From contig NIVC01000769.1 of the NCBI GenBank assembly GCA_002269645.1, positions 62,001 through 126,000 of the forward strand: a stretch of DNA of 64,000 nucleotides. The letters are read 5' to 3'. Numbering within the stretch: position 1 is the stretch's first letter; each line of letters begins with the position of its first letter. A program made the translations under genes and the position numbers. The stretch is from Macrostomum lignano. Its lineage: Eukaryota. The notes beneath the pieces are model-generated. The model worked only from the letters and a program-made list of their open reading frames with translations, ran no database searches and was not told the DNA's origin. This document shows positions 2,163 to 49,643 of the stretch, piece after piece.

Positions 2163-2213
2163 CTGAGGCTGGCTCGTACATTGCGCCCTGAGGCTGGCTC
2201 GTACATTGCGCCC
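2163..2213. repeat. 25-bp tandem duplication just upstream of the aquaglyceroporin
   Basis: ctgaggctggctcgtacattgcgcc occurs twice back to back (2163-2187, 2188-2212). Confidence 0.85.
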
Positions 2214-2269
2214 ATTGCGTCCTTCAACTATTCAGATTGACACACGAAGAAGAAACCAGAAGCGGAGGA

Positions 2270-3315
2270 ATGCCTGCCGAAGATCGAAGACGCTTGACCT
2301 GGTCGCGGGTCGAGTCGCGCCTGGTGCTGCGGCACCGGCCATCGCAGCTGTTCCTGTCGGAGCTGATCGGCACAGTAGTGCTGGTCATTATTGTGGACTT
2401 GGGCTGCGGCTTGGCCACCATCACCCAGCGCGGTGGCATCAAGAATTTCGTGCCCGCGGTGGGCATCGGCAACGGACTCGGTGCCATGACGGGGATCATG
2501 GTCAGCCTGCGCCTCTCCGGTGGCACATCAATCCTGCGGTCTCATTCGCCATGTTTACCCTGCGAAAGATGAGCTTTAAACACCTGCTGCTGTACCAGTG
2601 GGCGCAATACCTTGGCGGGTTCCTGGGCGCCATGGTCGTCAATCTGCTCTACTTTCAGATCTTCAACAATCTGAACGGCGGCCAGCTGGTGGCCTTTGGC
2701 CCGAACGGCACAGCGGGAACCTTCTTTACTTTGCCGAATCCGGCCATCAACAACGGAGTGGCCTTCGCCGACCAGGTGGTGGGCACCTCCCTGCTGCTGC
2801 TGGCCGTCAGAGCCATCACGGATCCCAACAACCTGAACACGCCACCGGCTCTGCAGCCTCTGCTCATCGGGCTAGTGATCATGGGCCTCATCATCTCCGA
2901 GGTGATCGTGTCCGGCACTTGTCTGAATCCGGCGCGCGACTTCGCACCGCGCCTGGCAACTCTGGCTCTCGGCTACGGGCCGGAGGTGCTCAGCTCGCGC
3001 TCCTTCTACTTCTTGGTGCCGCTGGTGGGCCCGTACGTCGGGGCCGTTCTGGGCGCCTGGGTCTACGAGCTGGCCTACGCCAAGCCGTTGCAGCTGCTGG
3101 TTGAGCAGGAGGCTGCGGCCGCCCTCAATGAGGATCACGCGAATGACGACGAGGACTTTCCCACTGCCAGGGTGCAGCAGCCTCACCTCCAGCAGCGTAC
3201 GCCGATATTGGCCTCTGCGACAAAGCGTCGACCATGCGACGATGAGGACAGCGTCAAGGCGGAGTCGCTGCGGCATGCGGCAACTGCATCGCTGGAGGAG
3301 AAGGCTGAGTGCTAG
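2270..3315 (+). CDS. Aquaglyceroporin (MIP family, AQP3/7/9/10-GlpF type), single coding exon, one apparent 1-bp deletion near 2524
   Basis: N-terminal frame (MPAED...[15 protein letters not shown]...LSGG) joins the second frame (HINPAVSF...[12 protein letters not shown]...[20 protein letters not shown]) if one C is restored in ggc[c]ac. Two NPA boxes, NPARD aquaglyceroporin signature, six hydrophobic helices. A possible acceptor (ttcag, 2231-2235) lies upstream of the ATG. Confidence 0.9.
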
Positions 3316-5540: not shown

Positions 5541-5884
5541 TCAATGCTCATTGGCGCACGTAAATCTGATGAGACAGCGCGTGAGCCGGAGGCAATGCTC
5601 GAAGTTTCCAATGCTACAGTCGCGACTCTGCTGCTCAGACTCCAGCAGCTGCAGTTCGCAGCGGATCAGCTGTTCGAAGAGGGCAATGCAGCGGCATGCA
5701 GGACACTCGAAATCAACGAAACAGTCGGTCATGCGGCCTTGGTGCTGCTGGCAGAGCGGCAGGGAGATGGCGGTGCAGCTGGACTGCTCAGACAGGGGAC
5801 TGCGCTCGCCTGTGCGGGCCACCGAAGGACTGGCGGGGTCCAGGAACTGCGCCTCGTCTACCAGACTGTGGCCCGGCTGTACCA
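5541..5884 (-). CDS. Putative terminal coding exon, Cys/His-rich; possibly the last exon of the repeat-protein gene
   Basis: GC-rich open frame preceded on the minus strand by acceptor attttcag (AG 5886-5885), phase 1, ending TGA 5543-5541; ..LCQQHQGRMTDCFVDFECPACRCIALFEQLIRC.. No family recognised. Confidence 0.4.
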
Positions 5885-6791
5885 CTGAAAATATTTTAAC
5901 ATTTTAGGCTGAAAATACTGCTCTTACTCGAAGATTCAATACATTCAGTGATTAAGTTCTCATAAATTTCTCTGATCTCCACAATATCGTGCTTTTATTA
6001 GTGCGAGACGAACACGTGCGTGCTGGCCTAGCGGGTTTGAAGGCGCGATAAGCGCGAGTATCTCAACGCAGTGATACTAGGATATTTTCGGATGTACGAT
6101 TTTCGCACTTATCGCAGAGACAGCGAGCTATGCAGAGAGCTGTGCGGACTACCTAGCAAGCCCGAATAAAGCTTGAACACAATTCCATAACACCTATCAA
6201 ATCGATTTATCAGACTGGTTACTTTAACTAATGCGCCAGTTTGTGACACACAGAAAGTGGTGGTCGAACCTCGCGCAGGTAGACCGAGAGCGGTTTCTGG
6301 CTTGTTTTGCCCTTGTCAGTCAGCCATTGCCGCACGCCGTCCTCTCCCACCACTAAACTGTGCACAGACGCTTCTTCTGTGCTGACATTTTTTATGGCGG
6401 CATTTTTCGGGCTATGAGAGAGATTTTATGATTCAAATCTTTATTCGACTACTTATTCTCAATAGTCTAAATTGAATTTCCTTCATAGCAATGCACTCAG
6501 CAACATTCAAGTTTCAAGTTTCCACCCAGAAACCAGTGGTACACTTTTCACAGATCTCAGCCACGAGTGACGAAATTCACACCACGCTTGCGGTTCTCTT
6601 CTCAACTGTGGGTGATGCCAATTGGCGTCACAAGACCCTGGCTTAACCTGGTGAGGAGAGAGTGGAGAGTTATGGAGTTGGATTAAAGCTGTCACTTCAT
6701 GACCAGTGTTTTCGGGGTGGAAACTTTACCTGTTGCTGAGTGCTTATATGCAGACTAAGCATTTGCCCTCAAAATTTGAGCAAAAATGCAT

Positions 6792-7170
6792 TGGAAAGAT
6801 GGAGCTACCAGTTACCAGCTATCACTGATTTTTATCAGCCCTTAAAAATCGAATTTCATGTAGCTCTGACAATGCGACATGCACAACCACAATATTGATC
6901 GGGTTTTCTCTGCATGCTCATCATACATAGATTGACAAATTTGGTATCGTTTCAAAAGTGTTTAAATTTGCAGACAACGCGTCTCCTGCCCGCCAGACGC
7001 TCGAATCTGATAAAAACATTGGGAATATTGGCAAGAGTTCCACTACATCCAAGATTTGCTAGTTTTGTCCGCTCTTTAAGAGCCGTTCCCGACCAATCAG
7101 AACACGTTGAGGGACAGGTATTCTCAGACTGATAAAAACCAATTGTAGCTGGTAGCTGGTAGATTTTCCA
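6792..7170. mobile_element. Degenerate MITE with about 45-bp imperfect terminal inverted repeats
   Basis: Left ctaccagttaccagctatcactgatttttatcag (6805-6838) vs right ctgataaaaaccaattgtagctggtagctggtag (about 7129-7162), whose reverse complement is ctaccagctaccagctacaattggtttttatcag. Confidence 0.6.
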
Positions 7171-7342
7171 GTTATTAGTCTCTTATGGAATTGGGCCTTG
7201 GAGGAAGGCTCTCACACCAGTGCTGCGGATCTCTAGATGCGGAGTTGTGAAGGAGAGAGGAACAAAGCTAAGGAAACAGGAACACAGCAAAACCCGAAAA
7301 GTGTTGGTGGGTTTTTGCATCGAACTGAAAGGTGAAAACGGA

Positions 7343-10300
7343 TTAAATCAGATGCAGATATCCGTCGGACCCACCGCTCGGATTCAAGGACAGCTCGCTG
7401 CGTCCTGCCAGATCATCCGAAATCGGGTCGGTTCGCTGCCATGCTGACGATTCGCCCTTCTGCTCGGCCGCCAACTGCGGCGGCGCCCAGGTCTCCCGCG
7501 CGTAGCCAACCAGCGCCGGGTCGTCCGGCTGCCGCGCCACAGTCGGCCGCTGCAGGCCAGCATCGCTGCTTGTCAAATGGGTCGATCGGCTGGTGCCAAA
7601 CTCCGATACTGAGCCGTCCGCTTGCCACTCTTGCGGCCCGTCAAAGTTGGACTCCGCAGCGCGTGATATTGTGCGCCACTGCGACACCTGGCTGGGACCG
7701 GACATCTCCGTGCCAAGGTCTGTCGCCCTCAAAGTGGTGGCAGTGGCAGCAGTCGGCCGCGACTCTCGAAGGTGTAGCTCTCGCGCCTCCTCCGGCCTCT
7801 GCGACTGGCAGCAGATTGAAGCTCGGCAGCGCCTGGTGCGGTAACGACAATTTTTTGGTTACCATTTCTTGTGCTTATTTTAGCTGTTACTGCGGAATAT
7901 AAGTTAATTAATTAAATCGTTATTGCTCCTGACCTATAGGATTTTGTTGGTGGATTTGTCGCTTCTGATGGCTGAACCATTGATTCCGAAGCCAAAGACT
8001 GCGGACCCAGCGTCTGTGGACCCAGCGTCTGCGGACCCAGCGTCTGCGGACCCAGCGTCTGCGGACCCAGCGTCTGCGGACCCAGCGTCTGCGGACCCAG
8101 CGTCTGCGGACCCAGCGTCTGCGGACCCAGCGTCTGCGGACCCAGCGTCTGCGGACCCAGCGTCTGCGGACCCAGCGTCTGCGGACCCAGCATCTGCGGA
8201 CCCAACGTCTGCGGACCCAGCGTCTGCGGACCCAGCGTCTGCGGACCCAGCGTCTGCGAATCCAACGTCTGCGGACCCAAAGTTTGAGGGCCAAGAGTTC
8301 GAGGACCAAGTGTTTGTGGTCCCAAAAATAGTGAGGCCAATGATTCTGGTCCCTGTGTTTTGGAAGCCATCGATTGCGGATCCAGCGTTTGCGGACCAAC
8401 TGTTAGTGGAGCCACAGATTGCGGAGCTCGTGTTTGAGAAGCCTGTGATTGCGGGCCGAGCGTCTGCGGGCCGAGCGTCTGCGGGCCAATCGACAGCGGA
8501 GCCAGCACTTGCGATGGTGGCTGGAATTGTTGTCTTTCTTCCTGGATAGTTGGTGTCGCCCGAAGGTCCTGGTTCTCTCGAAAATTTCGTGTGCTCCGGT
8601 TTTCTGATTGGGGCCGGGTATCTCGTGTTTCTCGGTAGTTTCTGGTGTCCCGGCCCGCCGGAAAATCGCGGGTGTCCCGGCCCGCCGGATAATCGCGGGT
8701 GTCCCGGCCTGCGGGATAATCGCGGGTGTCCCGGCCCGCCGGATAATCGCGGGTGTCCCGGCCCGCCGGATAATCGCGGGTGTCCCGGCCTGCGGGATAA
8801 TCGCGGGTGTCCCGGCCCGCCAGATAATCGCGGGTGTCCCGGCCCGCCGGATAATCGCGGGTGTCCCGGCCCGCCGGAAAATCGCGGGTGTCCCGGCCCG
8901 CCGGATAATCGCGGGTGTCCCGGCCCGCCGGAAAATCGAGGGTGTCCCGGCCCGCCGGGAGATCGCGGGTGTCCCGGCTTTCCTTGTAATCTCGAGTGCT
9001 CCGATAGTCGCGGGAGTCACCGGTTGCCTCAGAAGTTGACTCCGGCGTTGCTCCTTCGTCAGCACTGCTGCCAAAAGCCCCTGCAGCGCCCCGGCGATCA
9101 GCATCTGCTGGCTCCCATCGCGACAGCTGGCAGTCGGATCCGGCAGCTCCGTCATCTATGCAGCGGCGGCAGCAGCAGCACCGCGATGAAGTGCTGCGAT
9201 GTCGCTTGCCACTACTGGAGCCTCCTCGAGTAGTGGTGCACCGGACACAGCACTGACAGGTAGGGTGGCTTCTGCCATCTGCAGAGAGAATTACGACTGT
9301 GGTATGCATATACAGCAAATGGCGCTGCTTGGCACTTCTGCAGCTAGTTGTTTTTAATAAAGCAATTGGGCCTAGCCAATTTATGCAGAGCTTACGAAGA
9401 GATGACCTTTCGGACATTATTGATAGATCAAGGCAACTCAATTGCACGGGGCAGTTGCTTATTCTGCACCTTATAAATTTGAAAGACGTCACCTTCTTTT
9501 AAGCCTATTTAAGCCTATTTTTGCAGAAAATGCACACAAAGTCAATATCAATATTTTTTGATGCAGCGTATGAAGATGCATTGCTGGTGTCAGATAGATA
9601 ATGAGCAGCAATACACTACACTACATTTTGTGCTCAGGTCGGAATATTATGTATGAACAATTAAAGTGAGCTCACCTCTTTGCTGCCAGGCAGATGAGCT
9701 TCCATGTCTTCGTCGGCCGCCGCGGCGGTGTCGCGTCCTGCGTCGACTACCTCGACTCTGCCGATCTGAAAAGGATGCGCCACAGCCGGCATCTCCACCA
9801 CCGCCGCTGCCGCAGCAGCCGCAGTCAGATCTGCAAGGCATGTCGAACTCCAGCAGGCAGTGCTCAGGGCAGCTACCACTACTGCTGCTGCAGCAAGCAG
9901 TGCCAGTCGCTCCGAATCCGCCGCCGCCACAAGCACCGCCACCGCCGCCGCCACCGCAGATGCTGCCGCAGCAACCGGATGTGCCTTGCTGATCGGCAGT
10001 CCTTGGATGTGGCGCCTGGCAGCTGCATTGATTGCAGGCATCTTTGCAGCATGGGTCAGGCTTGCAGCACGGGTCAGGCTTGCAGCACGGGTCAGGCTTA
10101 CAGCACGGGTCAGGCTTGCAGCACGGGTCAGGCTTGCAGCACGGGTCAGGCTTGCAGCACGGGTCAGGCTTGCAGCACGGGTCAGGCTTGCAGCACGGGT
10201 CAGGCTTACAGCACGGGTCAGGCTTGCAGCACGGGTCAGGCTTGCAGCACGGGTCAGGCTTACAGCACGGGTCAGGCTTGCAGCACGGGTCAGGTTTGCA

Positions 10301-11820
10301 ATAGCAACAACGGCAGGTATCTTTCTTCTTGCGACAGCGATCAATTTTTATGTCAATCACGCGGCAGCATCTTGGCGGAGCCGGTTGAATCGGCATCTGG
10401 ATGGGCATTGGCATTGTCTGCGGCTGCTGTGGCGGCGGTGCCATTGGAGCAACGGGACCCGCTTTAGACTGCCGCTTGCGATGGCGTCGGCGCCGTTTCT
10501 TCGCCGGTGGAGGCGGTACGGGCGCCATGGTCCGCTGAATGCTGCCCTGCTGGTATGGGTCCACCATGGCCGCGCCGCTCATGCGCCAAACAGCGCCACG
10601 CATGTCGGCCAGCTCGCACAGGTGGCACTCCTCCTCTTCCTCCTCATCGGAGCTGCCTGAGCTGCTTTCAGAGAAGGCGCGCCAAGCTCTGGGCAGGGGC
10701 ACCTGCTGCTGTTGGGGCATCTGCTGCTGATTCGGATACGCATATTGATCTGGCGGCGGCTGCTGCATTGGCGGCTGTTGGTAGCTCTGCGCTGGCATCA
10801 CCCCAGTCTCCTCACGGGCAGGCGAGAGGCTCCCAGTTTCCGATGGGCTGTCACGGTCGGAGTTGCGCCGGCTGGAGCGATGCCGAGATTTTCGGCCTGC
10901 GTTTGGTCGCGAATCGCGTCGGCGACGAAGGCTGGAGTCCCGCGACCCAACAGGCTCGCTTGCTCTGGGCATTGAAAGTTCACTTTGCCGACGGAGAAGG
11001 TCGCGCGATCCTCTGCGATCATCCCTGCTGGTAGGGCTCCCAGCTCCATCGTCTTCATCTTCCATAAATGTCTGGCGGCTGACGCGAGAACCGTGCGACA
11101 GGCGAGACTCTCGACCCGCCCTTCTACGCCTCTCCTTCTGCTGCTGCCGGCGCAGATGCTGCGACGAGGATCGCCGCGTCTTCGATTTTTGTCGGCGCCT
11201 GCGATTTTCCCCATCGGAGCCGGCCGCTGCTTCATCATAGTCTTCATCGTCGCGCATTCTAAATGAGGTGCCGCTGTCCGCCCGCCGACGATTTGACTGG
11301 CTCTGTTGCTCAGTTGAGCAGCTTCTCGGTCTGCAGCTGTCACTTAGCTGACTGCCTGCCGAGGTTAAGCTGCACGACTCAGACTCGGAAGCCGATGACA
11401 CCGATGCGGCCGAAGTAGAGGAGGTCGGCGTTACAGTCACCGTCCGAGTGGCAGTCATTGTTGTTGCCGACCCGGCCGCAGCAGCGCTGGGTTGACAGTG
11501 TCGCTGGCAACCGACGTCACTGCGACGATAGGGCCGACCTTGTCGGATCTCGAACTGGCTGGATGTGGAGTCGCCCGTCGCCTGGGTTGTTGCCCGACCT
11601 TCCAGCCTGTCATACTCGGTGACTGTTGTGGTTGCCAAGTTTGATGTTGTTATTGACGTTGGAAGCTCTTGGGGCGCATTGTTGGTGGAATTGTTAATGT
11701 TGCTGCTCAACTGGTGGCAGCAGGTGTTGATCATTCCACTGTAGATGGTCAGCTGCGTCATGGACGATGGAGTTCGTTTCTCCAAGGACTCGACATTGTA
11801 CACCTGGTTCAACAACATCA
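7343..11820 (-). CDS. Large low-complexity Cys/Arg/Pro-rich orphan protein with three tandem peptide-repeat modules (core exons 11803 or 11820..9676, 9278..7934, 7832..7343)
   Basis: The 724-aa and 526-aa ORFs join through a phase-1 intron (donor AGAG|gtgagc at 9675, acceptor ttctctctgcag| at 9279). A 101-bp phase-2 intron (TATAG|gtcagg 7933; caccag| 7833) joins the open frame 7832-7343. Repeat periods 18, 27 and 15 bp all stay open in this frame. Confidence 0.75.
7998..8290 (-). repeat. Coding 15-bp minisatellite, (LGPQT) about 19 copies, degenerate copies to about 8490
   Basis: Plus-strand unit gcggacccagcgtct; encodes ...TLGPQTLGPQ... in the long minus frame. Confidence 0.9.
8645..8978 (-). 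repeat. Coding 27-bp minisatellite, (RDTRDYPAG) about 12 copies
   Basis: Plus-strand unit ccggcccgccggataatcgcgggtgtc with variants giving D-Y/F/L-P-A-G. Confidence 0.9.
10047..10300 (-). repeat. Coding 18-bp minisatellite, (KPDPCC) 14 copies
   Basis: Plus-strand unit gcagcacgggtcaggctt; the variant ttacagc is synonymous in the KPDPCC frame (TGC/TGT, both Cys). Confidence 0.9.
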
Positions 11821-12365
11821 ACAGAGAAGAAATTGCAGCTCATGGTCAATGCGTAGTGCTACTCGAATTTTTGGCTGTTACGAGCGTATCGCTGTAACCA
11901 AAACGAAACAAAAGAGCAAATACTTATTTTCGTTAACTGGATACAGCACACTTGGTACCTACCGATTTTGCTTCCAGATAAAAATACGAGTACTTCTAAG
12001 AAGAGGCAAAAAATCACTGCAACATAAGACGTTGAATCTGCTACAATTTTGTCTCAAAATAAAAGAAGCTACACCTATTCACCTACATTCACCTACTGGT
12101 GAATGAATCAGCGAGAAACGTTGGGCAATTCTAGAAGACTTTTGAGAAGATCTAATTTAATTAAAAAATGTTTGCTTCGCCGAGATAAGAATGGAGATCG
12201 ATCATAGCATAGGAGAATTACTGAAGTTTGTCATACATGTACTTGTTTATCATGCCGTATGTTTAGCATGCATTTGTCATGTTTAGCAGCCATACCTGCT
12301 ATGTTCACAAAGAAACAATAGAGAGAACAGAGAAGATCTGGTTTCCTCAAGACAAGGAAAATTAC

Positions 12366-13010
12366 AGCCAGGCAAATCTGCTCGAGACAACTTTGGTAGA
12401 TTTTTTCCTGAAATCAGTCACACTGATATAGAATAGATAGACACAAACCATTTTTTGTATAGTGGAAGAGAAAATTGCAATGCACAAGCCACCACAGTGC
12501 TTTATACAAGTACACAGTTCTGCTCACCTCATTAGCAGCTTTCAGCTGGCTCCCTGTCAAGTCTCCCGCAGCCTCGACACTTGTCACCATCTCGGGCAGT
12601 GAGACCTGCTGTCGCAACAGCAAGTCAACTATGGCGCTGGTCAACGCTGGTCTCAGAAGATGGTCGGCCGAGCTTCGGCTAAACAGCATGCAGTAAATTA
12701 TCTCAAAGCAGCGCTGCGTGTGCTTGGGACCAGTGATGCCACCTTGCTCTCGATCACTGACACAGGCCGTCAGGTCGAGTTTCCTGTCCTGAGGGATCGT
12801 AGAACTGGTTGAGTCTCCGCTAATTTCGGCTATGACGACACCGCTGGACGAATTCGCCGCCGCCTCGAAGATCTTCCGGGCGTCAGTCGAGCCGGTCGAG
12901 CTTTGAGATCGAAGTCTACGGAACCGCCTGGGCCCCTCGGTCTTGCAATGAATTCCGTCATGGCGTTTCCCACCTTTCAGCTTGTCGCGTATTGCCCTCA
13001 CGAAGTCCAT
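12366..13010 (-). CDS. Probable 5' exons of the repeat-protein gene (13010..12528; optional 42-bp exon 12407..12366)
   Basis: ATG at 13010 (MDFVRAIRDKLKGGKRH...), open GC-rich frame to a phase-0 donor GAG|gtgagc (12527); acceptor tgatttcag| then EKIYQSCLEQICLA|gtaatt; compatible with the phase-0 acceptor aaccag| at 11804 (VYNVESLEKR). Linkage to the downstream exons is inferred from phase only. Confidence 0.5.
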
Positions 13011-13815
13011 GTAGTCATGGGGCAAAATGAGGTCACCTCGCAAAATTGATAGTGTAACTTGGTGGCTTCCTCGTGTGCGCCTTGTCTTTGACTAGCTATG
13101 ATATTTGTAATGCGATATTCATGCATGCAATACTATTGGGGACTGGGCAATTCGCGGCTTACAAAATCTAGAAATGGAGACTTTACCATAGATTAGCATA
13201 TTCTTGAATTTGAACAAGTGCGTAAATAGCATAGCACAACCAGTTGCAAAACTGTGCATGGTCATCAACTTCAAAAACAACCTAAAGCATAATGACGATA
13301 TTTTTGTATTTTATATGCGAGCGTAACGATAAAAATAATACACTGGCGGAATAGGAGAGAGATAGTGGAGAGAGAAAGGAGAGATAGTCACGTTTTTGGA
13401 AACGAAAGCTTAGTTTGACTATAGTTTGGCAGGGGTGACTTGATAGTAATGGTACGGTGTGACAATCAATAGTATTGCAGGTTAATTGGGCAAATGGGAC
13501 TTATAAATATATGTATATTTTTAAGCCCAAATCTTACATAATTACAATCAATAAAACTGCTGTTGAAGATCTATTAGTCGTTTTAATTGCCTTCCTAATA
13601 GTTAACGCCGAGTCTTCTTTAGCATATGACAGAGTTTTCTTCTGTAAGAAAGAAAATATCAATTAAAACACGTTGACTCGGTGAACTCTCTGTAAAAAAA
13701 ATGTAGCAAACAGGTCTTTGCAACTATTATGCTAAACTATTTTCTTGGTCCCCCCCCCCACATGACTGCAACTTATATACAATGTATATTCATATCTGAT
13801 TTGATTTTGCTGAGT

Positions 13816-14076
13816 ACGTTAATAACTTTTGTCATTTTCAAACAATGTTGACAAATTTTTAATACAACGTTGCCACAAGTATAGCATTATATTTGCAGAA
13901 TTTACGCACGCAAGCACACACTCACACACACACATACAAAAGAGGAGGTCCGAAGTCGAATGTGAAAAAAGCAAGCTGCAGGCATGCACCGCATTCACTA
14001 TGATTTGTGTGTGTGAGTGAGTGCTGGTGTTAATATTTTGTCAACATTGGTTGCAAAGGACAAAAGTTATTGACGT
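13816..14076. mobile_element. Palindromic MITE/foldback element between divergent genes
   Basis: acgttaataacttttgtc..caatgttgacaaa (13816-13855) is inverted to ttttgtcaacattg..gacaaaagttattgacgt (14036-14076); internal (CA)n and (TG)n tracts are also inverted. Confidence 0.6.
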
Positions 14077-14430
14077 TTTACTTTAAATCAGGTGCATTAC
14101 GTGGGCCATCCTGTACTCCATTGATTCGTACAATTTGCCGTCAACGATAAAAAACACTAAGTTATAACAAAATAGTTGTTGTATATTTACTAGTACGAAT
14201 TAAATAATTTCTGGTGTTTAATAATTAAAGCGTCAAATAAATATATAAATCAGAAATAGATGATTTTGTATCTGCTACTATGGCAACCACACAAGCTGAC
14301 AGCTGCATTTTTTCAGTTTAGTACACAAACGCTGATTACTGAGGAATTCAGTTAGAGATTTAGATATTGTGATTGTTTTGGAACTCACCGTCCTTGTTAT
14401 TAAATCAAATCAGTCATCTTGATCTCGTCT

Positions 14431-17400
14431 ATGGCGACATACACTAGCGCAGAAGTCGATGGACTTCCAAGTATTCACCGGCCTAAGCCAAGAGAAGTTT
14501 GGAAATTCGATGATGAAGCCGGTGATTCAGCAACAAAAGCTCGTCAAATGTATGAGGTAAATAATTAAGCCTGTGTAACAATAACAAACCATTAAGATTT
14601 CAATAATTTCATAATTTAAACGCGATTAAAGCTACGATATTTAATTGCGTGACTCGTCTATACACGATCGATATTTTTTATTTTAGTAAGGCATCGCATA
14701 TTTAACAAGCAAACTTTTCAGTATCTAGAGCCTAGACAAGTAATTTTTTTAAAAAATAATAAAACGTAAATTATGAAATTCTAGTAATTCTTGAAGTTTC
14801 CTATCAAAATAAAATTGACATGTCATAAGTGCTCATAATATTTCATAAATATAGCAAAAAATAATTACTGCACCAGACTTTACACATGTCAATCCTGTAA
14901 AAAGTAGAAAAGGATTTACTTATATCTGCCACAGGATTTTTCACAACACAATACTGAATTTGTTGTCTTAGCACGTCTATCTTTTATGCATGTAATTTTG
15001 AAAAATCATATTGTATTGTTTTTAGAACATTTTTTCTACTCATTTCACTGTCTGAGTTATAAAGTGTAATCAAGGAAATTTTTATTTAATAAAGTATACA
15101 TCGCAAGAATATGAGTTTATAAACATTAAAAAATTCAAAGATTATTCATCAGAAGCTATAGAGTTGTGTTAGACTGTTAGGCATATTCATACAATTTTTC
15201 TATTTAAAATCTTAGTTCAGCCCCATTTTGCATCAATTTTAGCTTCAAGATCAACTAAGAAGCCAAAGAGAGGAACTGAGACGACGCGATGAAGTAATTC
15301 GAGAACTGACTAAGTAAGGCTATTTATAGCGCTCTTTGTAGTACTGAATTGAACATACTGTAATTAAGTTTCTTAAAATTCTTCCAGTCGCGACCCGGCA
15401 GGAGGCAGCGGCGTCTGGGCAGCATCCGCCGCCGTCAACGGCGTCGGCGCCACGTCCGCACTTCTGGAGCACGGCCACTGTGGCATCACGGCCTGCCCGT
15501 CGGCGCGCAGCGAAGTCGCCGCGCTGCGCGTCAAAGTCGACGGCCTACAGGCGAAGCTACGTGAGAAGCAGCTGGAATTGGACTCGGCGCTGGAGTCAGC
15601 GCAGCGGCACCGGGCCGAGGCTGACCGGCTTCGCGAGGACAACGCGCGCCAGCTGGCGTTGAACGCGGAGCTCTCGCGCCAGATTGACTGTTGCGAGGCG
15701 ACGCGCGGCTCTTACGAGGAAGTGAAAAGCCGCAGCGGTCAGGCCGTATTCGAATTGCAAGAGCAGCTTCGGCGAGCCCAGGATCGAACTCGCGACCTTG
15801 AGGCTAAACTGGCCGACCGGGATGTCCGAGACGCCGGACGATCGAGCGCGGAGCGCCGCCTGACGGAGTTCGCGGCCAACTTGGCCTACCATCTGGAGGT
15901 CAGCGAGTCGGCCAGTCTGGACACCCTCATCAACCGGGCCTCGAGTCTGGCTCAGGTGAGTACTTGGTGTACTTTTAATAAAGGATATTTTCAGTTGAAG
16001 TGGTGAAATGAACTCGCGGCTCGAGCAAGATCGGCCAATAAAAACTTGCATATTCATAAGCAATTCATAAATTCATAATGTTGCATTAAAAATCTATATT
16101 TGAGTGTTTATTTCGTTAAGTACTGCATTAGCATCAGATCAATATCAAATATAGGTATTATAATTTCTGATCGAACAGTGCAAGTTCGAAGAAGATCGGT
16201 TGAGCCGTTTTTTCTCTAATCGATCACATAGATAGATCGTCACACACAGACAAAGCATTTTTATAGTATATGGGATCTTTTGTACTACGAAAAATAAAGA
16301 CCTTGTTGTCCCAACAACCAAGATCGAGGCATTTGAAAAAATTTCGCTTTGAATTGGTAGTTCTACTAGTAAGTAGTCAGCAAAAGATTGAAACTCTCAT
16401 CCCAATGTTTTTCTCGAATTGTAAGGAGGCGGCGACTCTCCGCGCCCGGTCGCGCAGCCAGGAGGAGCAGCTGGCGGCTCACGAGGCGGAGGCGCGGGCC
16501 AACCGGGAGACAATTCAGCGCCTGCTGGCGGAGGTGAACCGCGAGCACCGGCTGCGGCCGCCTATCAGACGCACCAGTCGGAGTTCCGCACGGGCACTGA
16601 GAAGCTCACAGCTGAACGAGACGATCTGGCCAGACAAGTTGAGCTGCTGGAGGCCCGGCTGGAGTCCAACAGGCGGGTGCTGGAAGCCACCAAGGCTGAG
16701 CTGGCGGAGAAGGACAGCCACGTGGCGAAGGTGAGCCTGCGGGTCCCTGTGTGCAATAGCCTCCCTGCCAGTAGCTTGTTGGTCGCGGTTAGTACAGTAT
16801 AGTTTACTTGGGATATTCACGGATGCAGTTTTGGGACACAAAAATATGCAAAATTTTACTCCCTAGAGATGTTAGCTCAGCCGTCTTCCCTGTCTCTGCC
16901 TTTCTAGGTATTTGAAGCTTTAATAGAATAATCGAAATCGAAATCTATCGAAAATAGAAAAAGAATAATCGTACGAGTTATTCATTCGATTCAATTGCAA
17001 TACTAGTTTCTAAGAATTTGACTCCTGATCAATACGCGCCGTCTCTTACTTGAAGATGAATTTTAATTTTTAGTTAAAAATGATTTTGTGTGTAATTTAA
17101 ATATTTGTGGTGTTTTTTAAGTTACCGCAGCAATATTACAGTATATATTGTAGGACTAGCAAAATTTGTGATTTTATCATCAGGATAGAGGCTAAAGTTT
17201 TGATTTTGTGCCAGCAAAAAGCAGAAAGTTATTAACTTCGATTCTATTTTCTAAGCAATGAATTGTCAATGCAGAGCTTGGGCGCAGAGCAGCTCAGCAT
17301 GGTAAACGCCTCTGGTTTGATTCCATGCGCAAACACATTCATTTGGCAGCATGGGGAATCTTCAAGGCACAGAGAGTACATGTCTGACGATAAAATTGCC

Positions 17401-19765
17401 TCATCGTTGGTTGTTGGGCGATATGTCGCCGAAGGTGTTGCGCCAGGTTGGCCATAGCCCTCCTGTGCGAATTTCCAATGCGCATTTTGCCCCATTGCAG
17501 GTCGATTCGACAAGTCGGGAGCTGCAGCGCCGAGCAGAGGACAGTGAGCAGCAGCTGGCCTCCCTGCTCCAGTCCTTGGCTTCAACGCTGAGCACGCAAT
17601 TCAGTCACGTGACAGCTACGGAGGAGGCTGTCAAAGAGCGCGTGTGCGCCCTCTGCCGCGACTACAAGGAGCTGTCGGAAGCGTCTGCGGCTCACGAGGA
17701 GCGGTCACGAAACGCAGCCAAGCAGCTGGAGGCTCAGGTCAGCAACAGTCGCGAGCGGGAGGCCCAGGCAAGGCGGGCCGAAGTTGAACTGCGCGACATG
17801 CACGAGCGGCTGCGGGCGATGGAGAGCGAGCTGGCGGCTGGTGATGTTGTGAGGGACGGCCTGGCCGCTGACAGGCAGAAATTCTACAAGTACATGCAGC
17901 AGCTGGCCGAGGCGATGAAGATGGATCAGGTGAGGCTGGTTGGATAGTTTTATTGATTCCTCGTGGCCTTTTTATGCAACTTTTACGAGCCCAATTCAAG
18001 CCAATATTTTCTGTTCTGGATAAACAAGTCATTTAATTGTTTCTCGGTAAATGACTCATGAGAAGTGCCCCTACTAATGCTTGGTTAAACAGCCTATTTT
18101 ATCCATGTGAAGTCAACTTGGTACCTAAACAGTAGCAAAATCAATATAACGAATCCTCGAAATACTCGGGAATTATTCTTTAGATATTGAAACACGATGC
18201 AATTAAATATTTTAATATATTCAGCTTTCAAATGCGCAAATTGCAAACACGCGAAGGAAGCCGTTTCTATTCGATCTTAGATCCATCTACCAGCTTTTTC
18301 TAGATAGTAATCTTCTTGAATCTACGAAAACATGATTTAGTAATTAATTGTCTGTGTGTTTTTATTATCTATGGTGGAAACCCGTCCTCTGGCAGGTCGG
18401 CGCCGACATCGGCTTCGACATGTTGGGCGACGCACTGCTGGCCAGGGCCAGCAGCTGGCCCGACTGTCCGATGACGCCGCCCACGACAAGGCTAGTACAG
18501 TGTACAGTCTGCAGAGGAAAGTCAAAGCGCTCAAAGAGCAGCTGGAGTCGCGCGATCTGCACATGGATTTGTTGCGCAAGAAAATCGGCCAGCTGGAGGA
18601 GCGCGCAGCCGGCCGGGTGGAGGTCGAGCGCGAGCGGGACAATGAAAACGGCCGCGTCCGGCGGCTGCAGAAGCAGCTGGAGAAGTCGCAGGCGCAGCTG
18701 GAGCAGGCCAGGGCAGAGATTGTCAGCCTGAAAGCGCAGCTACTCGAATGCAGCAATTTGAAGTTGGCCGCTCTTGAGCAGGACCGCGAGCTGGCGGCCC
18801 TGGAGAACACCATGGAGAAGCTGGAGCAGGTGCGCCAGAAGCAGGCTAAGAAAATCTCTCTATTAAAATCCGAAGTCGAAACGCGTCAACGCGAGTTGGG
18901 CGACAAAAGTACCGCAGCCGAGGGCGCGTTAAGCAACTTGAGCAGCGAGCTGCGCACCACAAAATCGGCGCTTGAGGAGGCCAGACGGCGCGAACACCAA
19001 CTGCTGGACCTGCGCGGGTGGTCGGCCGCATGCTGGGCCTGGACGTGGAGTCTCTGGCCGTGCCCGACTACGAAATTGTCAACCGGCTGGAGCGGCTCAT
19101 TCAGGTGAGATTATTTCTATTATTTCTATTGGTAAACAGGCCTGACTCTCAAGCCAAAGTACCCAGGCCCGCTTTATGGACAACTGAAGTACAAGGACGC
19201 CACATTCGATTTTCTAAGAAATGATCCGGAGTTCAGTAAGGAACGCATATTTGTCGTATCGCTGGTGCATCTAGTGTGCTCTGGAGAACGCATAGCCCTG
19301 AATGGGGTTTTGCCATAGACAAATTCGAAAAGTGTGCTGAAACTTTGCAATTGAGAAAATGGTATAAAATCCACCTGGAGGCGTCCCCTTATAATAATAG
19401 TTTTTTGCGATCTCCAGGCCCACCAGAGCAACGTGTACACAGCAGTGTCAGCCAACGAAGCGATGCAGGACATGCAGGCCAGCTTCTTGGATGGCTACAC
19501 TGACGCTCAGCGGCACCAGCTGAGCCTAACGGCCGCGTCAAAGCAGGAGCCAAAGCGTCCGCCCTGTCCGATGTGCCGCATGAGCCGCTGCTCCTGTCGG
19601 CGGCCCCTCGAAGCGTCTGGTGGCGGCGTCGTTGGCGGTGTAGGAGGTCGGCTAAGCGGCCGGAGCAGCCGGAGCGGATGCCGTGGCGGCGTCGGGGGCG
19701 GAGGAGCCTCCAAGGCGCGCACCAGGAGCGTATCGCCGACTGGAAGGGACAGCCGAAAGTACTGA
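14431..19765 (+). CDS. CCDC170: Coiled-coil domain-containing protein 170, about 850 aa; exons 14431-14556, 15243-15313, 15388-15955, 16426-16730, 17501-17929, 18396-19104, 19418-19765
   Basis: GT-AG boundaries with matching phases. Motifs match remembered CCDC170 sequence: ARSEVAALRVK, HEAEARANRETIQRLLAEVNRE, MESELAAGDVVRDGL..KFYKYMQQLAEAMKMDQV, DIGFDM, LQRKVK..LESRDLHMDLLRKKI, MLGLDVESLAVPDYEIVNRLERL. Three apparent 1-bp deletions (about 16550, 18449, 19017). Confidence 0.88.
17281..17459 (+). mobile_element. Dispersed repeat, probable second tRNA-derived SINE family, copy in CCDC170 intron 4
   Basis: A-box-like agctcagcatgg and B-box-like ggtttgattcc, then caaggcacagagagtacatgtctgacgat..aattgcctcatcgttggttg..gatatgtcgccgaaggtgttgcgccaggttggcc, homologous to the reverse complement of 41393-41592. 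Confidence 0.55.
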
Positions 19766-19968
19766 GTTTATTTTCGAAATGCGAACATCGCTTTTCTTGT
19801 GAAATGATTTTCGATGCAAAACAGCAGCTTGTAAGTGCTTCTGTAGGTTAATTTAGGCTTGGGGTTTTGGAATCGCTTTTAAAGTTTTCGGAATTACGAG
19901 CTAAATATTTTAATAAAGCGTCAACAATAACTACGCAGTTTAAATTGTAATTTTGAGAACAAAATATC

Positions 19969-20178
19969 TGTACGGCAGTGTAGTTTCATGAAACACTCTG
20001 ATCGAGTTCCGATATTAATATGATGTACTTCAATACCCAGCTAAATACTTTGTTATTTTTACATTTATTTACTTTATTTATTTATTTAAATATTGTACGG
20101 CAGTGTAGTTTCATGAAACACTCTGATCGAGTTCCGATATTAATATGATGTACTTCAATACCCAGCTAAATACTTTGT
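19969..20178. repeat. 85-bp exact direct repeat, two copies separated by a 40-bp AT-rich spacer
   Basis: tgtacggcagtgtagtttcatgaaacactctgatcgagttccgatattaatatgatgtacttcaatacccagctaaatactttgt at 19969-20053 and 20094-20178. Confidence 0.9.
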
Positions 20179-21418
20179 GACTACCAGATTCTACTTGGGT
20201 TTTCAAATCCGTTTGAAAATTTGTTTGTGCGATACCGTTTGGCAATCGCAGCCCAGGCCCTTTTTTTACGTAACCAATAAATTTATCTACTCTCCACTGA
20301 TTCGGGATCTTGAACTGTGCCGAATCCTATAGCTGCACGACCTCTTCCACCTGTGCTATAATCCTGATCATGTTAGTTGCTTGCTTGCTCGAATATCCCC
20401 CTTTCTAAGTTTTCCCCACTCTAATTGCTGCTTTCTTCTATTTATAGTTTTGCGGATTAATACTATTCTAATTTCTTGAGTTTTGTACACAACTCGACTT
20501 GCAAGCAAAATTCTGCTGTGATGATGAATTTGCGGCAAGCAATTTCGCGTTGATTTTGGTGTTGCAACATTTTCTTATGCACTTCCTTGCAAAAATTTCA
20601 ATCATTTTTTCGCGTTGATTCGCGCACTCCAATTTAAACTCCTACATGTACCTGAACTGATGTCTACGAGTATATAGGGAGCTACCAAATCTATAATAGT
20701 TGCAACTTCTTCCCGTAACGTTGCACTCCATGGAAAGTGCATCGCAAATATGAGGTTTATATATAGCTATATGTGGGGGATTTTGTATCCCACTCTTGTG
20801 CATTCAAATATATACTATCTATCTTTTGTGTAGATCTTTATATATTTATTTAATTTCTATCTTACATAGTATTGCTTCGATTTGTTTCATTTGTTTAGCC
20901 TGCGAAGTTGTTTTGGATTGTCACTGTTTGCTTTATTCAAGATTTGCTGTGTGATCAAAATAGACAATGTACATCATCGTACTCGTACCAGTGATGTTAC
21001 TTATGGACGACTCTACTAAAGTCGTCCAAGTACGTCTATACAAGAACCCTTTTTATTTTTTTAACAGTTATTAATAAAGATTCGATTGGTTTGCACCTCG
21101 ATCCCGCGCAGTACAATGTTTCTTGCGCGAAAAGCAAATTAGGACGTCTGTATAATTTAAATAAGTGTTGAAAACTACGTGTCTGCAGAATTGCTTTTGC
21201 TGTCTTTTCTATTGGCATCGATCTTCATAAAAGCTTGCTGCATGTATTTTATGCAATCGATAAATCGATTCAACGCGCCTACTGCAGTGTATGAGAATTT
21301 TAGCGATTTCATCAAGTTATGTCTATGGCCTAAATGTTCCTAGGGTTTTAAGGATCAGTTTGCAACTATGTTTGAGCAGCGAACCTTTTCTAATCAGCTA
21401 CCACTCAATTTTTTGGCC

Positions 21419-22569
21419 ATGGCTGAATTATTTTCATAGCAAGACATTCGAAGCTTGATGAAGTTTCAGTTTCTGCAAGGAAAAAACCGCCGGATATGTT
21501 TAGGGAGCTTCAGCAGGTGCTTCGCAACTGTGCACCAACTGAGCAGACAGTTCGAAAATGGTACCGGCTGTTCGCTGAGGGAAGAGAGAGCGTTGAGGAC
21601 AATGATCGCTCTGGAAGGCCAATGACTGCAACCAACGAGACTGCTGTGAAGAAAGTGCAAGAGCTCCTGGATGATGATCGGCGACGGACTTGCGAAGAGT
21701 TGGCAGAAGACGTTGGTGGGTCAGTAGGAAGCGTCCACACCATTCTGACTGAGCGTCTTCACCTGCCGAAAAAGTTCTGCAAGTGGGTGCCACACCTGCT
21801 GACAGGTGAGCAAAAGATGCAGCAAACTCTGGCTTCTACCTGCGTCGGTTCCATCGAGAAGGGGAGGATTTTCTATCGAGAATTGTTGCGAGAGACGAGC
21901 CGTGGGTTTACAACTGGGATCCTGAGACAAAGGCCCAGTCTGCCGAATGGCTTCCAGCACATTCTCCAAGACCTCAGAAGGCCATCAGGAAGCAGGGTGC
22001 GCTGAAGATCATGCACGTCATGTTTTTTGATTCCCAAGAAATCCTGCTGAACTCGGCAGTCCCACAAGGAGCCACCGTCAGCGGAGACTACTACAAGTGG
22101 ATTATGCAGGAGAAGTTGCGCCCAGAAATACGAAAGGCGCCCTGGTCTGCTGGAATCTGGCGTGATTCTGCTGCACGACAATGCGCGAGCACATTGCGAG
22201 CACAACGTCGTGGAACTCCTAAGCAAATGGAGCTGGGAAGTGCTCCAACATGCACCCTATTCGTCTGATTTGTCGCTGTGCGACTTTTTCTTATTTCGAT
22301 CTGTGAAGAGGCACCTTTGGGGCATTCGATTTGACAGCGTCGAGCACATCGAAGCTACTTGCAATCAAGCTGTTCGCCAAACGAACGCGAGGTGGTGTGA
22401 GTTCCGGAATCAGAGGTCTGGTACATCGCTGGTAGAAGTGCAAAGACGTTGGTGGTAAATATTTCAAGTGACAGAATCATGTTAAACAATCTAACAGTGC
22501 TTTCATAGTTCCAGTTGTTTTGTGTTCAGTTTTGTAGGGCACCGAAAAGAAATTTTTGAATACACCTCG
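21419..22569 (+). mobile_element. Decayed mariner (Tc1/mariner, DD34D) transposase relic
   Basis: HTH region (FRELQQV..TVRKWYRLFAEGRESVEDNDRSGRP), WVPHLL motif, DEPWVY, HDNA-x-PYSSDLSLCDFFLF with 34 residues between the two Asp; in-frame stop and several frameshifts; probable right TIR ..aaatttttgaatacacctcg (about 22550-22569). Left TIR not clearly found. Confidence 0.9.
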
Positions 22570-29700: not shown

Positions 29701-32700
29701 GAGTGTATTATGTAAGTATTATAGTAATCACTAATCAAATACCTTAGGAAAAACAACTTAGGAGTCAAGTCAACTTACTTCCATTCTCAATAATAGCAAC
29801 AATTTCAAAATCTATAACAGTAATGTAAACTACATAATTAATGTAATTATTTGACAAAGCACTTTTGGCATTAGGTCTGCATTATGTTTTGCTTTTAATA
29901 AAAAACAGAAGGCAAATACCCAACCAATTACTGTACAAATAGTGAAATTGACAAAATTTACAATTGTTTATTTTTATTTTTAAAGTGCCAGAAGTTCCAG
30001 ACTTATCACAATGTAATTTGAAAATATGCTGCTTTAAAAAAAGTAACTTCTAGAAGTGCCAGAAGTGCTGGAACTTTACCAAACACTGTTGATAGGGATA
30101 AAGTTTTTTATACCTAAATTTCAAGAGGCATGAGTCTATTAAATATTAGGTATATATAAAAGTTTAGGGGGGTGACTAACCAAAAGGTTAACTACCAATA
30201 ACAGGGAGTCTATATATCTATTAAGGATTAAGAAAGCTTACAGGACAGAATGTGACATTCAAAAACGAGAAAAGTGCTCATAGATCAGCAGAATGGCCAT
30301 GCCATAATTGCTAAGAAACATTAGAATAGAAATATCAAATTTTCTTTTAACTGTTTTAGGTGAAAAGCCCAAGCTTCGTTTTGACGATCCAAGTGTCTGT
30401 AAATGCTTCTTGCTGGGCTGCTGCCCGCACGAAATTCTACAGGGCACGGTAAGTTGCATTCTGCCATATTGATCTTTCAAGCTTTAGTTGTAAAGCAGAA
30501 GAATTAGAAAACAGAATTTTGTTGATGTTAATATTGAGTTTGGGGAAGATTGAGCATTGAGCTGTTTTCTAATTGATTGTTAGCTTAGATTTTGTGTACT
30601 GTTTAGTCCTGCACTATCTTATGCAGTAAAGCTAGTGTTATTCTTATTACTATATAGTAGGTATATTAATAGTGGCCGCGCTGACTACCGATTTTTCGGC
30701 GCAAAAATTCACTTGACAATTCTCCCCCCTTTTCTGTTTTCTCTCCTATCTCCGAATGTCAAGCGGAAAGGCAGAGAACAGACAGACAGTGTTAGCCAGA
30801 CAGTGTGACCATTAACTATCAATGCATCTTCTTCTTAGGCACTGACACTAGACCAAAATTAGGTACGTAGCCCATGGGGTAAGTAAAACCGAACCAACTT
30901 GTGACAATTATGCAACTGACTGTGTTGAGATTGTGAAACTGTGCGGCAGCGTACAGTTGTTCTTTTTGTTGCTGGCAGAACTCTGGCAGAACAAATGCAT
31001 TCCAAATTCCGATTTGACATTGTATATTCATTTCCTGCTCCAAGCGTGTGGCGCTAAGCGAGAACTTGTGAGTATATGACTCTTTTTTTGTCCCGTGGTC
31101 TTGCCTTCTCGGCTGTCTAGCTTCTCCTGACTTCTAATCTACTAAATTGCTCGTCTTTTGACTAGTGAAACAATACCGGTAAAGTAGACAAATCTGCCAT
31201 TTCATTCTCTATCCTCTTCTTGATTCCCTACTCAAAAAATCCCGCCAACACGCAACGATTCGGTATCTTCGCTGGAAGCAGAAGATCCCATCCGAACCAG
31301 CTGAGAACGAGTCGGCATTGTACGCGGATCGTCTACTCGGGATGTTCTGTAAGCCGTGAACAAAGACTAGGGCCTTGTGAATAAATGAATTGTTAATAAA
31401 GCTCATGTTGGTCCGCTAGTGAAAGTGCTGCTCATGCTGCTCATCTTCGTGCACCACTGCTAGCGCAAATATTGACAGGTTTGTGTTGCCCTCCAGTTTG
31501 AGGCTCGGCGACTGTCATGTCATCATCATCTCTGCAACATGCCGGCCCACTTGTAAGACAAATAATCTCTGCTGACTTAATAAGCGTGAGGAATTGTAGC
31601 ATTGTGAGAGACTGAGAGGTATTCATCAATTTGCCTTGTTTTATCATTTGTCATATTCTTTTGTGCAATATAAAAGAAGCATTGTTTTAATCAGCTTTAT
31701 ACTACTTTTAATATTATTTGCATAATACACGCATAGTTAACACCTGCGTTTCTGTTAATCTCCTCTTTTTTCTATGTGTTGCTTCCGCGCAGCGAATGGA
31801 CATCGGCGACTGTCCGAATGTGCACGACGTGGCCCTGAAAGCCGACTACACGCAGGCTAGGGATCGGCGCCGCTACAACTTCGAATACGATGTAAGTCCG
31901 TTAGCTTCACCCCGAGGTGCGGTGAACTGATATATGACCCCCCCCGACCCCCAATTTCCTTGGCAGGAGGGGTCAGCTGACCCTCTGGTACCCGCCACTG
32001 CAGAATATCTGTCGCTTTATCCAGTATAATTACAAGGATCATAATCCTATAGCTCAGAGTTGGTTTCACACTTTAATATAACTTTGTTGTCAAAACAAGC
32101 ATAGATAAAAGTTCTTGCGTCAGTCGAAAACCGCCTTGCAATCAGATCTTTACAGCCTGGGCTGTTCTCAAAAGGGAAAGGACTTACGGAACACCTCTCC
32201 TCGTATATAGTCTCGGCTTAAGATCGAGTATGTAGTATCTAAGATCTTTTCTATTCGTGTAACTACTTACCGGTATGGGTAGTAGTTTATGTCTCTTATC
32301 CAGTAGTATTGGGCTTTAAATCGAGCATATAGTATCTTCGAAATTTCAATTTGTGCTACTACTCACGCCTGATAAGTAGTATAATAGCCTCCTAATCCGT
32401 TCGTTAAACAACTCGCAGGCCCTGAACCACTTGGAGAACTTCATTGGCGAATGCGATCGCCGAACCGAGCAGGCTAAGAAGCGCCTCCGCGACACCCAGG
32501 AGGACCTGTCCGAGGACGCCAGCGAGAAGGCCGAACTAATTAGCAAGCTGGGCGAAGAGATCGGCACTAAATTGGCCAACGCCGAGAAGCTCGGCGCCGA
32601 GGGCAAAGTCGACGAGAGTCTCAAACTGATGAAGGAGGTCGACGAGCTCAGTCGCAAGAAAGGCGACGTTGAGAAAGAGTTTCGCGACTGTATGCCTAAT

Positions 32701-49605: not shown

Positions 49606-49643
<38 letters not shown>

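Follow-up and report, generated by a model that had tools for sequence, protein, structure and literature searches.

Keratin-associated proteins (KAPs, or KRTAPs) and SMCP are small proteins of about 100-300 amino acids (aa) that consist almost entirely of Cys repeats, the KAP repeat unit being a CCxPx pentapeptide. SMCP itself is P/C/Q-rich, testis-expressed and arose in placentals (PMC10791643). The speckle proteins SON and SRRM2, by comparison, are large and natively unfolded and have big low-complexity domains (PMC9324279; PMC7671692), and a pattern of adjacent Arg and Asp (R/D) residues is a reported driver of speckle targeting (PMC9324279). In the flatworm Macrostomum lignano, the germline is enriched in non-conserved genes, and these can be indispensable for sperm morphology (PMC5816591). 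Here we describe a minus-strand locus of M. lignano that is a genuine protein-coding gene and whose 1,585-aa product joins Pro-Cys-Cys repeats, an R/D repeat block and a Gly-Pro-Gln pentapeptide block in a single chain. The gene lies within a stretch of 64,000 nucleotides (nt; positions 62,001 to 126,000 of contig NIVC01000769.1, assembly GCA_002269645.1), referred to as the window, whose numbering is used throughout.

GenBank already holds this gene as an unnamed, uncharacterised product that is Pfam-free on record. Its deposited range on the minus strand is 5541-13010 in window numbering, 67541-75010 in the contig record and 13897-21366 in locus L002 (NIVC01000769.1). The window matches L002 with 100% identity; subtracting 8356 from an L002 position, or 62000 from a record position, gives the window position. 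We took deposited ranges to be coding sequence (CDS) ranges, because the range listed for an intron-less aquaporin copy equals its CDS exactly. The GenBank annotation goes back to StringTie/TACO assemblies of RNA-seq data guided by the genome, with TBONE, of which the coding 'coregenes' were retained (PMC5730564), so that the deposited junctions are transcript-based. One parsimonious structure fits the deposited CDS boundaries and length, a chain of five exons (483 + 2,128 + 1,345 + 458 + 344 = 4,758 nt, i.e. 1,585 aa) with GT..AG throughout. The features of this model are as follows (slashes within sequences mark exon boundaries).

Coding exon 1: 12528-13010, minus strand, 483 nt; ATG at 13010-13008, the deposited CDS start being 13010; donor GAG/GTGAGC.
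Coding exon 2 (exon 3 of an initial annotation): 9676-11803, minus strand, 2,128 nt; encodes the end of the N-terminal region, a Ser/Thr-rich linker, an arginine/serine-like (RS-like) basic region, a Gln/Pro tract, an acidic run, a cluster resembling a nuclear localisation signal (NLS), (KPDPCC)14 and a Cys/Gly-rich segment.
Coding exon 3 (previously exon 4): 7934-9278, minus strand, 1,345 nt; encodes a Cys/Arg-rich segment and the RDTRDYPAG and LGPQT arrays.
Coding exon 4 (previously exon 5, now shortened): 7375-7832, minus strand, 458 nt; donor GCG/GTGGGT at 7375/7374.
Coding exon 5 (absent from the initial annotation): 5541-5884, minus strand, 344 nt; acceptor tttcag/TGG, stop codon TGA at 5543-5541; encodes the C-terminal Cys-rich segment.
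Micro-exon of the initial annotation: 12366-12407, minus strand, 42 nt; in phase and flanked by AG/GT, present in no deposited product.
Upstream ATG: 13126-13124, with the stretch 13042-13126, minus strand; out of frame in the window copy.

The initial annotation, made from the letters alone, had joined five exons into 4,488 nt and 1,495 aa, a chain that indeed contains no internal stop and has GT..AG at every junction. Its strand, frame and ATG and its first, third and fourth exons are retained here, while its micro-exon and 3′ end proved wrong. The stop it had placed at 7343 (7345-7343) falls inside intron 4, and the deposited CDS continues for 1.8 kb to 5541, so that the product measures 1,585 rather than 1,495 aa. 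The exon 4 donor at 7375/7374 and the terminal exon 5884-5541 were adopted because the deposited CDS end and length could be reproduced in no other way. At the 5′ end, the UniProt fragment P0051 opens with the same MDFVRAIRD as exon 1, and all three N-terminal UniProt fragments (P0051-P0053) have exon 1 spliced directly to exon 2 (..KAANE/VYNVE..).

As a constitutive exon, the 42-nt micro-exon is ruled out, being absent from the deposited products and from the three UniProt fragments; its inclusion would yield 1,599 and 1,627 aa for the window gene and its second genomic copy, versus the deposited 1,585 and 1,613 aa. The deposited record gives only the longest product of each gene, and the micro-exon could possibly be an unannotated cassette exon, judging by the 100% conservation of the exon and its splice sites between the two copies, in an intron whose remaining sequence shows 7.3% divergence and numerous indels. 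Positions 12358-12422 form a perfectly conserved island between the copies, with indels on both sides. Outside the CDS, neither AATAAA nor ATTAAA occurs within 1.2 kb downstream of the stop codon, and a TATAAAA at 13309-13315, on the gene's strand and ~185 nt 5′ of the upstream ATG, is a possible core promoter element.

The second copy, L001 (NIVC01002593.1; deposited gene 13277-20884 of L001, 1094-8701 of the contig record, minus strand), is 98-99% identical over the locus and has a deposited product of 1,613 aa. Applied to L001, the five-exon structure gives 4,842 nt, i.e. 1,613 aa; the CDS boundaries and product length of the deposited model (GCA_002269645.1) are therefore reproduced in both copies. 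The 28-aa length difference is composed of 38 aa gained in L001 from the upstream ATG, which opens its CDS, and 10 aa lost with two LGPQT units, exon 3 of L001 being 30 nt shorter. Because these LGPQT units account for part of the deposited length difference, the repeat array lies inside the deposited CDS. In the window copy, a TT insertion (TTTT in the T-run at 13045-13042, TT in L001) shifts the upstream ATG out of frame; this indel is probably real and not an assembly error, as both N-termini occur in independent UniProt fragments.

Differences between the copies within the CDS amount to 14 synonymous and 11 non-synonymous changes, all of them in aa 1-524 (residue numbering follows the 1,585-aa model). 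The resulting ratio of non-synonymous to synonymous change, pN/pS, is 0.25 (binomial p = 7e-4), and the unique N-terminal third of the protein is thus under selective constraint. From window position ~10700 to 7375 the copies show zero differences over ~3.3 kb, introns 2 and 3 included; intron 1 differs by the above 7.3% plus indels and intron 4 by 2%, and exon 5 is again 100% identical. Such a mosaic points to gene conversion between the duplicated loci in the recent past, or else to a collapse in the assembly. Large duplicated chromosomes are a feature of the DV1 line, with 180-312 Mb of duplicated sequence (PMC5730564).

Downstream of its N-terminal third, the CDS carries three tandem arrays, detected with Tandem Repeats Finder.

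18-bp array, 14.3 copies: 10044-10300, minus strand; translated as (KPDPCC)14, with 14 exact units.
27-bp array, 12.4 copies: 8644-8978, minus strand; translated as (RDTRDYPAG)12, with 12 RDT.D..AG units, 7 of them exact RDTRDYPAG; the neutral R/D mixed-charge block consists of this array and its degenerate flanks (8590-9021).
LGPQT region: 7999-8517, minus strand; the 15-bp array itself (7999-8316, ~19-21 copies), older units that have degenerated, and 2.5 copies at 8450-8487; 19 exact peptide units, ~30 with the degenerate ones included.

These three DNA arrays are translated peptide repeats, recently expanded by slippage or unequal exchange and kept in frame. The modules named in the initial annotation, (KPDPCC)14, (RDTRDYPAG)12 and (LGPQT)19+, were recovered both as DNA repeats and at the peptide level. 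In the proposed frame, variants among repeat units are synonymous/non-synonymous in numbers of 5/0 for KPDPCC, 14/4 for LGPQT and 4/6 for RDTRDYPAG. All alternative frames score worse for LGPQT, an antisense frame with a shared wobble position ties at 5/0 for KPDPCC, and the sole better-scoring frame for RDTRDYPAG (6/5, plus strand) is interrupted by stops. The older LGPQT units specify the same peptide from quite different codons. The earlier claim that all periods are multiples of three (3n) was borne out as well: this holds for three of three arrays in the gene, unlike 10 of the 11 arrays found elsewhere in the window, whose periods range from 19 to 46 bp, the one exception being small (Fisher p = 0.011). 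Finally, the second genomic copy has exactly two LGPQT units fewer (30 nt), in frame. Given the synonymous variants, the 3n periods and this in-frame copy difference, the reading frame of the arrays is beyond chance.

The same data bear on the possibility that the locus is non-functional, i.e. a transcribed, repeat-rich sequence whose long open reading frame (ORF) arose by chance from tandem repeats and GC-rich DNA. Further frames are open across the arrays, 15% of the M. lignano genome is simple or tandem repeat (PMC5730564), the 2-nt indel removes the upstream ATG from the window copy, and no homologues were found, all of which such an accident would accommodate. It would leave without explanation the pN/pS of 0.25 (p = 7e-4) in the unique N-terminal third, the synonymous excess among repeat units in one frame, the restriction of 3n periods to the gene (barring one small array elsewhere), the in-frame copy-number difference, and a phase kept by five exons over 4.76 kb in two copies. 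We therefore consider a non-functional locus very unlikely.

To place the protein, we rely on an exhaustive HMMER search with aa 1-677 against 1.84 billion representatives, which gave a single match: M. lignano's own 595-aa UniProt fragment A0A1I8J7A8, whose 90% cluster contains two more M. lignano fragments. Word-indexed protein searches (aa 1-281, and aa 282-1495 of the earlier model) returned nothing, a weak negative given that the aa 1-281 query missed even the species' own UniProt fragments; no large-database search covered the C-terminal exon. The collections searched apparently hold no close Macrostomum relatives, the best aquaporin match from outside M. lignano being only 46% identical. 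Pfam returned nothing above threshold for any part of the protein, repeat modules included, a PDB sequence search with the Cys core, N-terminus and C-terminus returned nothing significant, and no paralogue is present elsewhere within the window. A literature search found no paper mentioning the repeat peptides or the UniProt accessions of the fragments, and these accessions and the ID of a neighbouring gene are absent from the accessible part of a supplementary table of Grudniewska 2018; a 2026 paper in Cells yielded a single 'scaf769' row, which is unrelated.

The gene is thus lineage-specific, as initially proposed, in that only M. lignano fragments matched aa 1-677; the label 'orphan' holds for everything searched, although the gene was not unannotated. 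With Macrostomum-specific genes making up 44.5% of all M. lignano genes and 54.2% of germline genes (PMC5816591), orphan status is common in this species. What is unusual is the combination of modules, lineage-specific low-complexity repeat proteins being a known kind. In UniRef, N-terminal fragments are named 'Protein kinase domain-containing protein' and 'Bromo domain-containing protein' (P0051/P0053; UniRef100_A0A1I8J7A8, A0A1I8GN53). These names are probably annotation artefacts, as no such Pfam domain was found.

By its sequence, the protein appears to be mostly low-complexity or disordered, with the following segments from N- to C-terminus.

aa 1-215: unique and moderately hydrophobic; helices predicted with low confidence.
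aa 216-330: Ser/Thr-rich.
aa 331-475 (10862-11296, minus strand): RS-like basic region of 145 aa with 39 Arg, 25 Ser and 11 RS/SR dipeptides; net charge per residue +0.14.
aa 476-530: Gln/Pro-rich.
aa ~545-553: acidic run SSSGSSDEEEEEE.
aa 596-605 (10472-10501, minus strand): NLS-like cluster KKRRRRHRKR, following PPPPA; a sequence motif only.
aa 638-920 (9130-10375, minus strand): Cys core of 283 aa with 61 Cys (21.6%) and 23 CC pairs, split by the intron 9279-9675; contains (KPDPCC)14, a Gly/Cys segment, the Arg-rich stretch SRRRTRHRRGGRRRHG and RCCCCRRC.
aa 957-1100: R/D block of 144 aa with 32 Arg, 29 Asp and 27 RD/DR dipeptides; charged fraction 0.45, net charge per residue 0.007.
aa 1125-1297: LGPQT block.
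aa 1298-1470: acidic, non-repetitive.
aa 1471-1585: Cys-rich C-terminus of 115 aa with 11 Cys, mainly from exon 5884-5541; helices predicted with low confidence.

Taken as a whole, the protein contains 88 Cys with 25 CC pairs and 10.8% Arg, including several RRRR runs, and is nearly neutral, its 212 Lys and Arg versus 185 Asp and Glu leaving a net charge of about +27. The KKRRRRHRKR cluster, the Q/P tracts and the many CC pairs pointed out in the initial annotation are all present. There is no signal peptide: the first 30 aa have a hydropathy of -1.1, and the alternative N-terminus of L001 (MHEYRITNII..) is hydrophilic as well. Nor is there a membrane segment, the highest 19-aa hydropathy being 1.06. 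An intracellular location, which had been proposed from the missing signal peptide, is a reasonable reading now that neither gene copy is seen to encode one.

Materials that are tanned or cross-linked outside the cell typically contain tandem peptide repeats with Tyr, Cys and Pro. Such repeats are present here, and the protein might on this ground be taken for the precursor of a secreted or extracellular biomaterial, be it of eggshell, adhesive, rhabdite or seminal fluid. We regard this as extremely improbable: both copies are without a signal peptide (MDFVRAIRDK.. in the window, MHEYRITNII.. in L001) and a membrane segment, and strong basic NLS-like clusters are at odds with export.

The Cys core invites comparison with SMCP and the KRTAPs, which likewise have short Pro/Cys repeats with CC doublets, are lineage-restricted and have no signal peptide, SMCP being in addition testis-expressed (PMC10791643). 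As proteins of this type are presumed to be disulfide-cross-linked, the core might, by analogy, be cross-linked too. The initial annotation went further, reading the whole protein as a probably intracellular structural or biomaterial protein, for example of sperm or a sclerotised structure. Spelled out, this would be a cytoplasmic, disulfide-cross-linked structural protein of SMCP/KAP type, for instance of the sperm shaft, bristle or stylet, with Tyr-containing and pentapeptide blocks that would contribute material properties. Such a role would fit a core with 21.6% Cys, 23 CC pairs and (KPDPCC)14 in a protein that has no signal peptide, and P/C-rich, testis-expressed, lineage-restricted proteins do exist, as SMCP illustrates (PMC10791643). 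In M. lignano, moreover, the sperm is complex and the stylet hard, and non-conserved genes affect both (PMC5816591).

Against this stands, first, that no keratin-associated or other Cys-rich structural family matched in Pfam; hmmscan, run on 291 aa of the Cys core with a cutoff of E <= 10, yielded only sub-threshold DUF6338 and Trypan_PARP and no keratin-associated family, a result to be read with the caveat that HMMER composition filters may suppress matches of this type. The flatworm unit, a hexapeptide of CC plus Pro, bears a resemblance only to the KAP pentapeptide, there being no sequence relationship to SMCP or the KRTAPs. Second, the Cys-rich part makes up <20% of the protein (283 of 1,585 aa) and sits amid NLS-like, RS-like, R/D and pentapeptide modules. 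A purely structural role leaves the NLS-like cluster, the RS-like region and the R/D block without a function, and to our knowledge none of these is found in KAPs or SMCP. Third, the flatworm protein is about ten times larger than either, and its gene, flanked by aquaporin and sulfate transporter genes, differs in setting from that of the small SMCP, a member of the epidermal differentiation complex. The analogy therefore extends to the Pro-Cys-Cys repeats and CC pairs and breaks down at family membership, size and the remaining modules, making an SMCP/KAP-like structural protein possible, though on the unlikely side.

The modules left over by this comparison point toward the nucleus. In human cells, closely adjacent R/D residues and RS repeats lead to nuclear speckles, and clustered basic residues to nucleoli (PMC9324279; bioRxiv 10.1101/771592). 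Since the protein has no secretion signal but does have an SV40-like basic cluster, RRRR runs, the RS-like region and the R/D pairs, we favour a nuclear location. With SON, SRRM2 and synthetic (DR)n, i.e. the class of RS speckle proteins and arginine-rich mixed-charge domains (R-MCDs), the flatworm protein shares a large and mostly disordered chain and RS-like sequence, and it may share the neutral mixed-charge block. Its R/D block has adjacent R/D residues and a net charge near zero, with alternation that is local (RDTRD) and more than half of the residues uncharged, unlike in (DR)50 (PMC9324279). It could accordingly be imagined as a broadly expressed rather than germline-specific scaffold of nuclear condensates or splicing speckles, a functional analogue of SON and SRRM2, both large and natively unfolded (PMC9324279; PMC7671692), with the RS-like region, R/D block, Q/P tract and NLS-like cluster as the relevant modules.

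We consider such a speckle scaffold improbable. No RRM, G-patch or other RNA-binding domain appeared in any Pfam scan, and there are only 11 RS/SR dipeptides in the 145 aa of the RS-like region, which together with the missing RRM sets the protein apart from SR proteins. If such a scaffold were essential, one would expect to see it in flatworms at large, whereas no homologue was found in the collections searched, and the Cys-rich module would be unaccounted for. In sum, the protein differs from the SON/SRRM2 class in having no conserved domain, a low RS density, diluted charges, a Cys module and no conservation beyond Macrostomum.

The reading we prefer, and to which we give an even chance, is that of an intracellular, probably nuclear, multivalent and cross-linkable scaffold, with the male germline as its most likely setting. 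A scaffold inside the cell is proposed because the protein has neither a signal peptide nor a membrane segment and is mostly low-complexity. The NLS-like KKRRRRHRKR, the RS-like region and the neutral R/D block would bring it to the nucleus, into RNA- or chromatin-associated condensates; the 22%-Cys core, with (KPDPCC)14 and its CC- and Arg-rich flanks, would permit disulfide or metal-mediated cross-linking; and a flexible spacer would be supplied by the Gly-Pro-Gln pentapeptide block. Spermatids may be where this happens, for example in condensing chromatin or a perinuclear structure. Sperm chromatin of M. lignano condenses as discrete bodies (PMC5816591). In being a non-conserved gene of this organism, the repeat gene resembles Mlig-sperm1 and other Macrostomum- or flatworm-specific germline genes; unlike it, the Mlig-sperm1 family has relatives in other free-living flatworms, whereas the repeat gene matched nothing.

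Two further comparisons bear on individual modules of the proposed scaffold. Long runs of Gly/Pro pentapeptides occur in elastin (VPGXG) and flagelliform silk (GPGGX), and the run of ~25-30 LGPQT units suggests, by analogy, a flexible, turn-rich spacer. LGPQT differs from these in having G-P instead of P-G, in being Gln/Thr-rich and in showing no homology, and the elastic proteins are secreted, whereas the flatworm protein has no signal peptide. Mammalian protamine P1 combines Arg clusters with Cys, as do, locally, the stretches SRRRTRHRRGGRRRHG and KRHRSTSSRCCCCRRC. Compared with protamines, the flatworm protein is poor in Arg (10.8%), nearly neutral and ~30 times larger, and neither a protamine nor a metallothionein family appeared in the Pfam scans; processing into small basic peptides would be pure speculation.

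Several points weigh against a nuclear, cross-linkable scaffold or the model it is built on. The R/D unit has two RD pairs per nine residues, diluted by Tyr, Pro, Ala and Gly, and published speckle-targeting sequences are far denser. A module with 22% Cys is unusual for nuclear-speckle proteins, and since both cytosol and nucleus are reducing environments, cross-links would have to await oxidation at a late stage, as happens in sperm. The copies are identical from ~aa 525 onward, so that their comparison gives no selection signal for the repeat half. The agreement between our reconstruction and the deposited products is one of boundaries and lengths only. Lastly, AlphaFold2 (AF2) models made without an alignment had a predicted confidence (pLDDT) of 36.6 for the N-terminal 203 aa and 45.8 for the C-terminal 132 aa, values too low at both ends to infer a fold.

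A more specific version of the scaffold can be envisaged, in which a new Macrostomum-specific protein of sperm chromatin or the perinuclear region unites condensate-type modules (RS-like region, R/D repeats, NLS) with protamine-like Arg/Cys stretches and (KPDPCC)n, and in which phase separation followed by oxidative locking would pack the spermatid nucleus into discrete chromatin bodies. We regard this version as a long shot.

The remainder of the window contains further genes and a number of tandem arrays; Rfam and tRNA scans of the window gave no matches.

2206-3315: AQP3-like aquaglyceroporin, 100% identical to M. lignano BOX15_Mlig015833g2/g3.
16270-19108: ORFs that by eye resemble a coiled-coil gene.
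21496-22005: part of the N-terminus of a mariner/Mos1-type transposase; its HTH_32 and HTH_48 matches lie below the Pfam cutoffs.
32431-33633, 37549-38157 and 48691-49809: a LUC7-like protein whose RS/RD tail is long, an exon of an SLC7-type amino-acid permease and a poly-Gln ORF (Pfam-negative).
34619-35547: 20-bp array, 46.5 copies, with a spurious 343-aa ORF that has meaningless sub-threshold Pfam matches.
39033-40119, 43520-43690, 44622-45195 and 45816-46154: four arrays whose periods (40, 32, 46 and 43 bp) are not 3n in any case.
53474-58954: 23-bp satellite with the unit TGATTGAGTTTGAGGGTTTAGTT; 5.5 kb, 238 copies, 95% matches, GC skew ~0.95, i.e. extreme strand asymmetry.
59683-61029: 31-bp array of 44 copies, following the 23-bp satellite.

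As the ORF of the 20-bp array illustrates, tandem repeats in the M. lignano genome can mimic ORFs.

An orphan repeat protein is unsurprising in itself in a species in which nearly half of the genes are lineage-specific and 15% of the genome is simple or tandem repeat; with the gene already in the public annotation, it is a curiosity and no new kind of system. If the protein is made, a single polypeptide would carry three chemically different repeat modules, one Cys-rich and cross-linkable, one zwitterionic with R/D and Tyr, and one of Gly-Pro-Gln pentapeptides, in addition to nuclear-targeting features. Transgenesis, RNA interference by soaking and the transparent body of M. lignano make tests of localisation and loss of function practical. 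The gene could thereby illustrate how lineage-specific low-complexity proteins are built through repeat expansion and put to use, perhaps in sperm.

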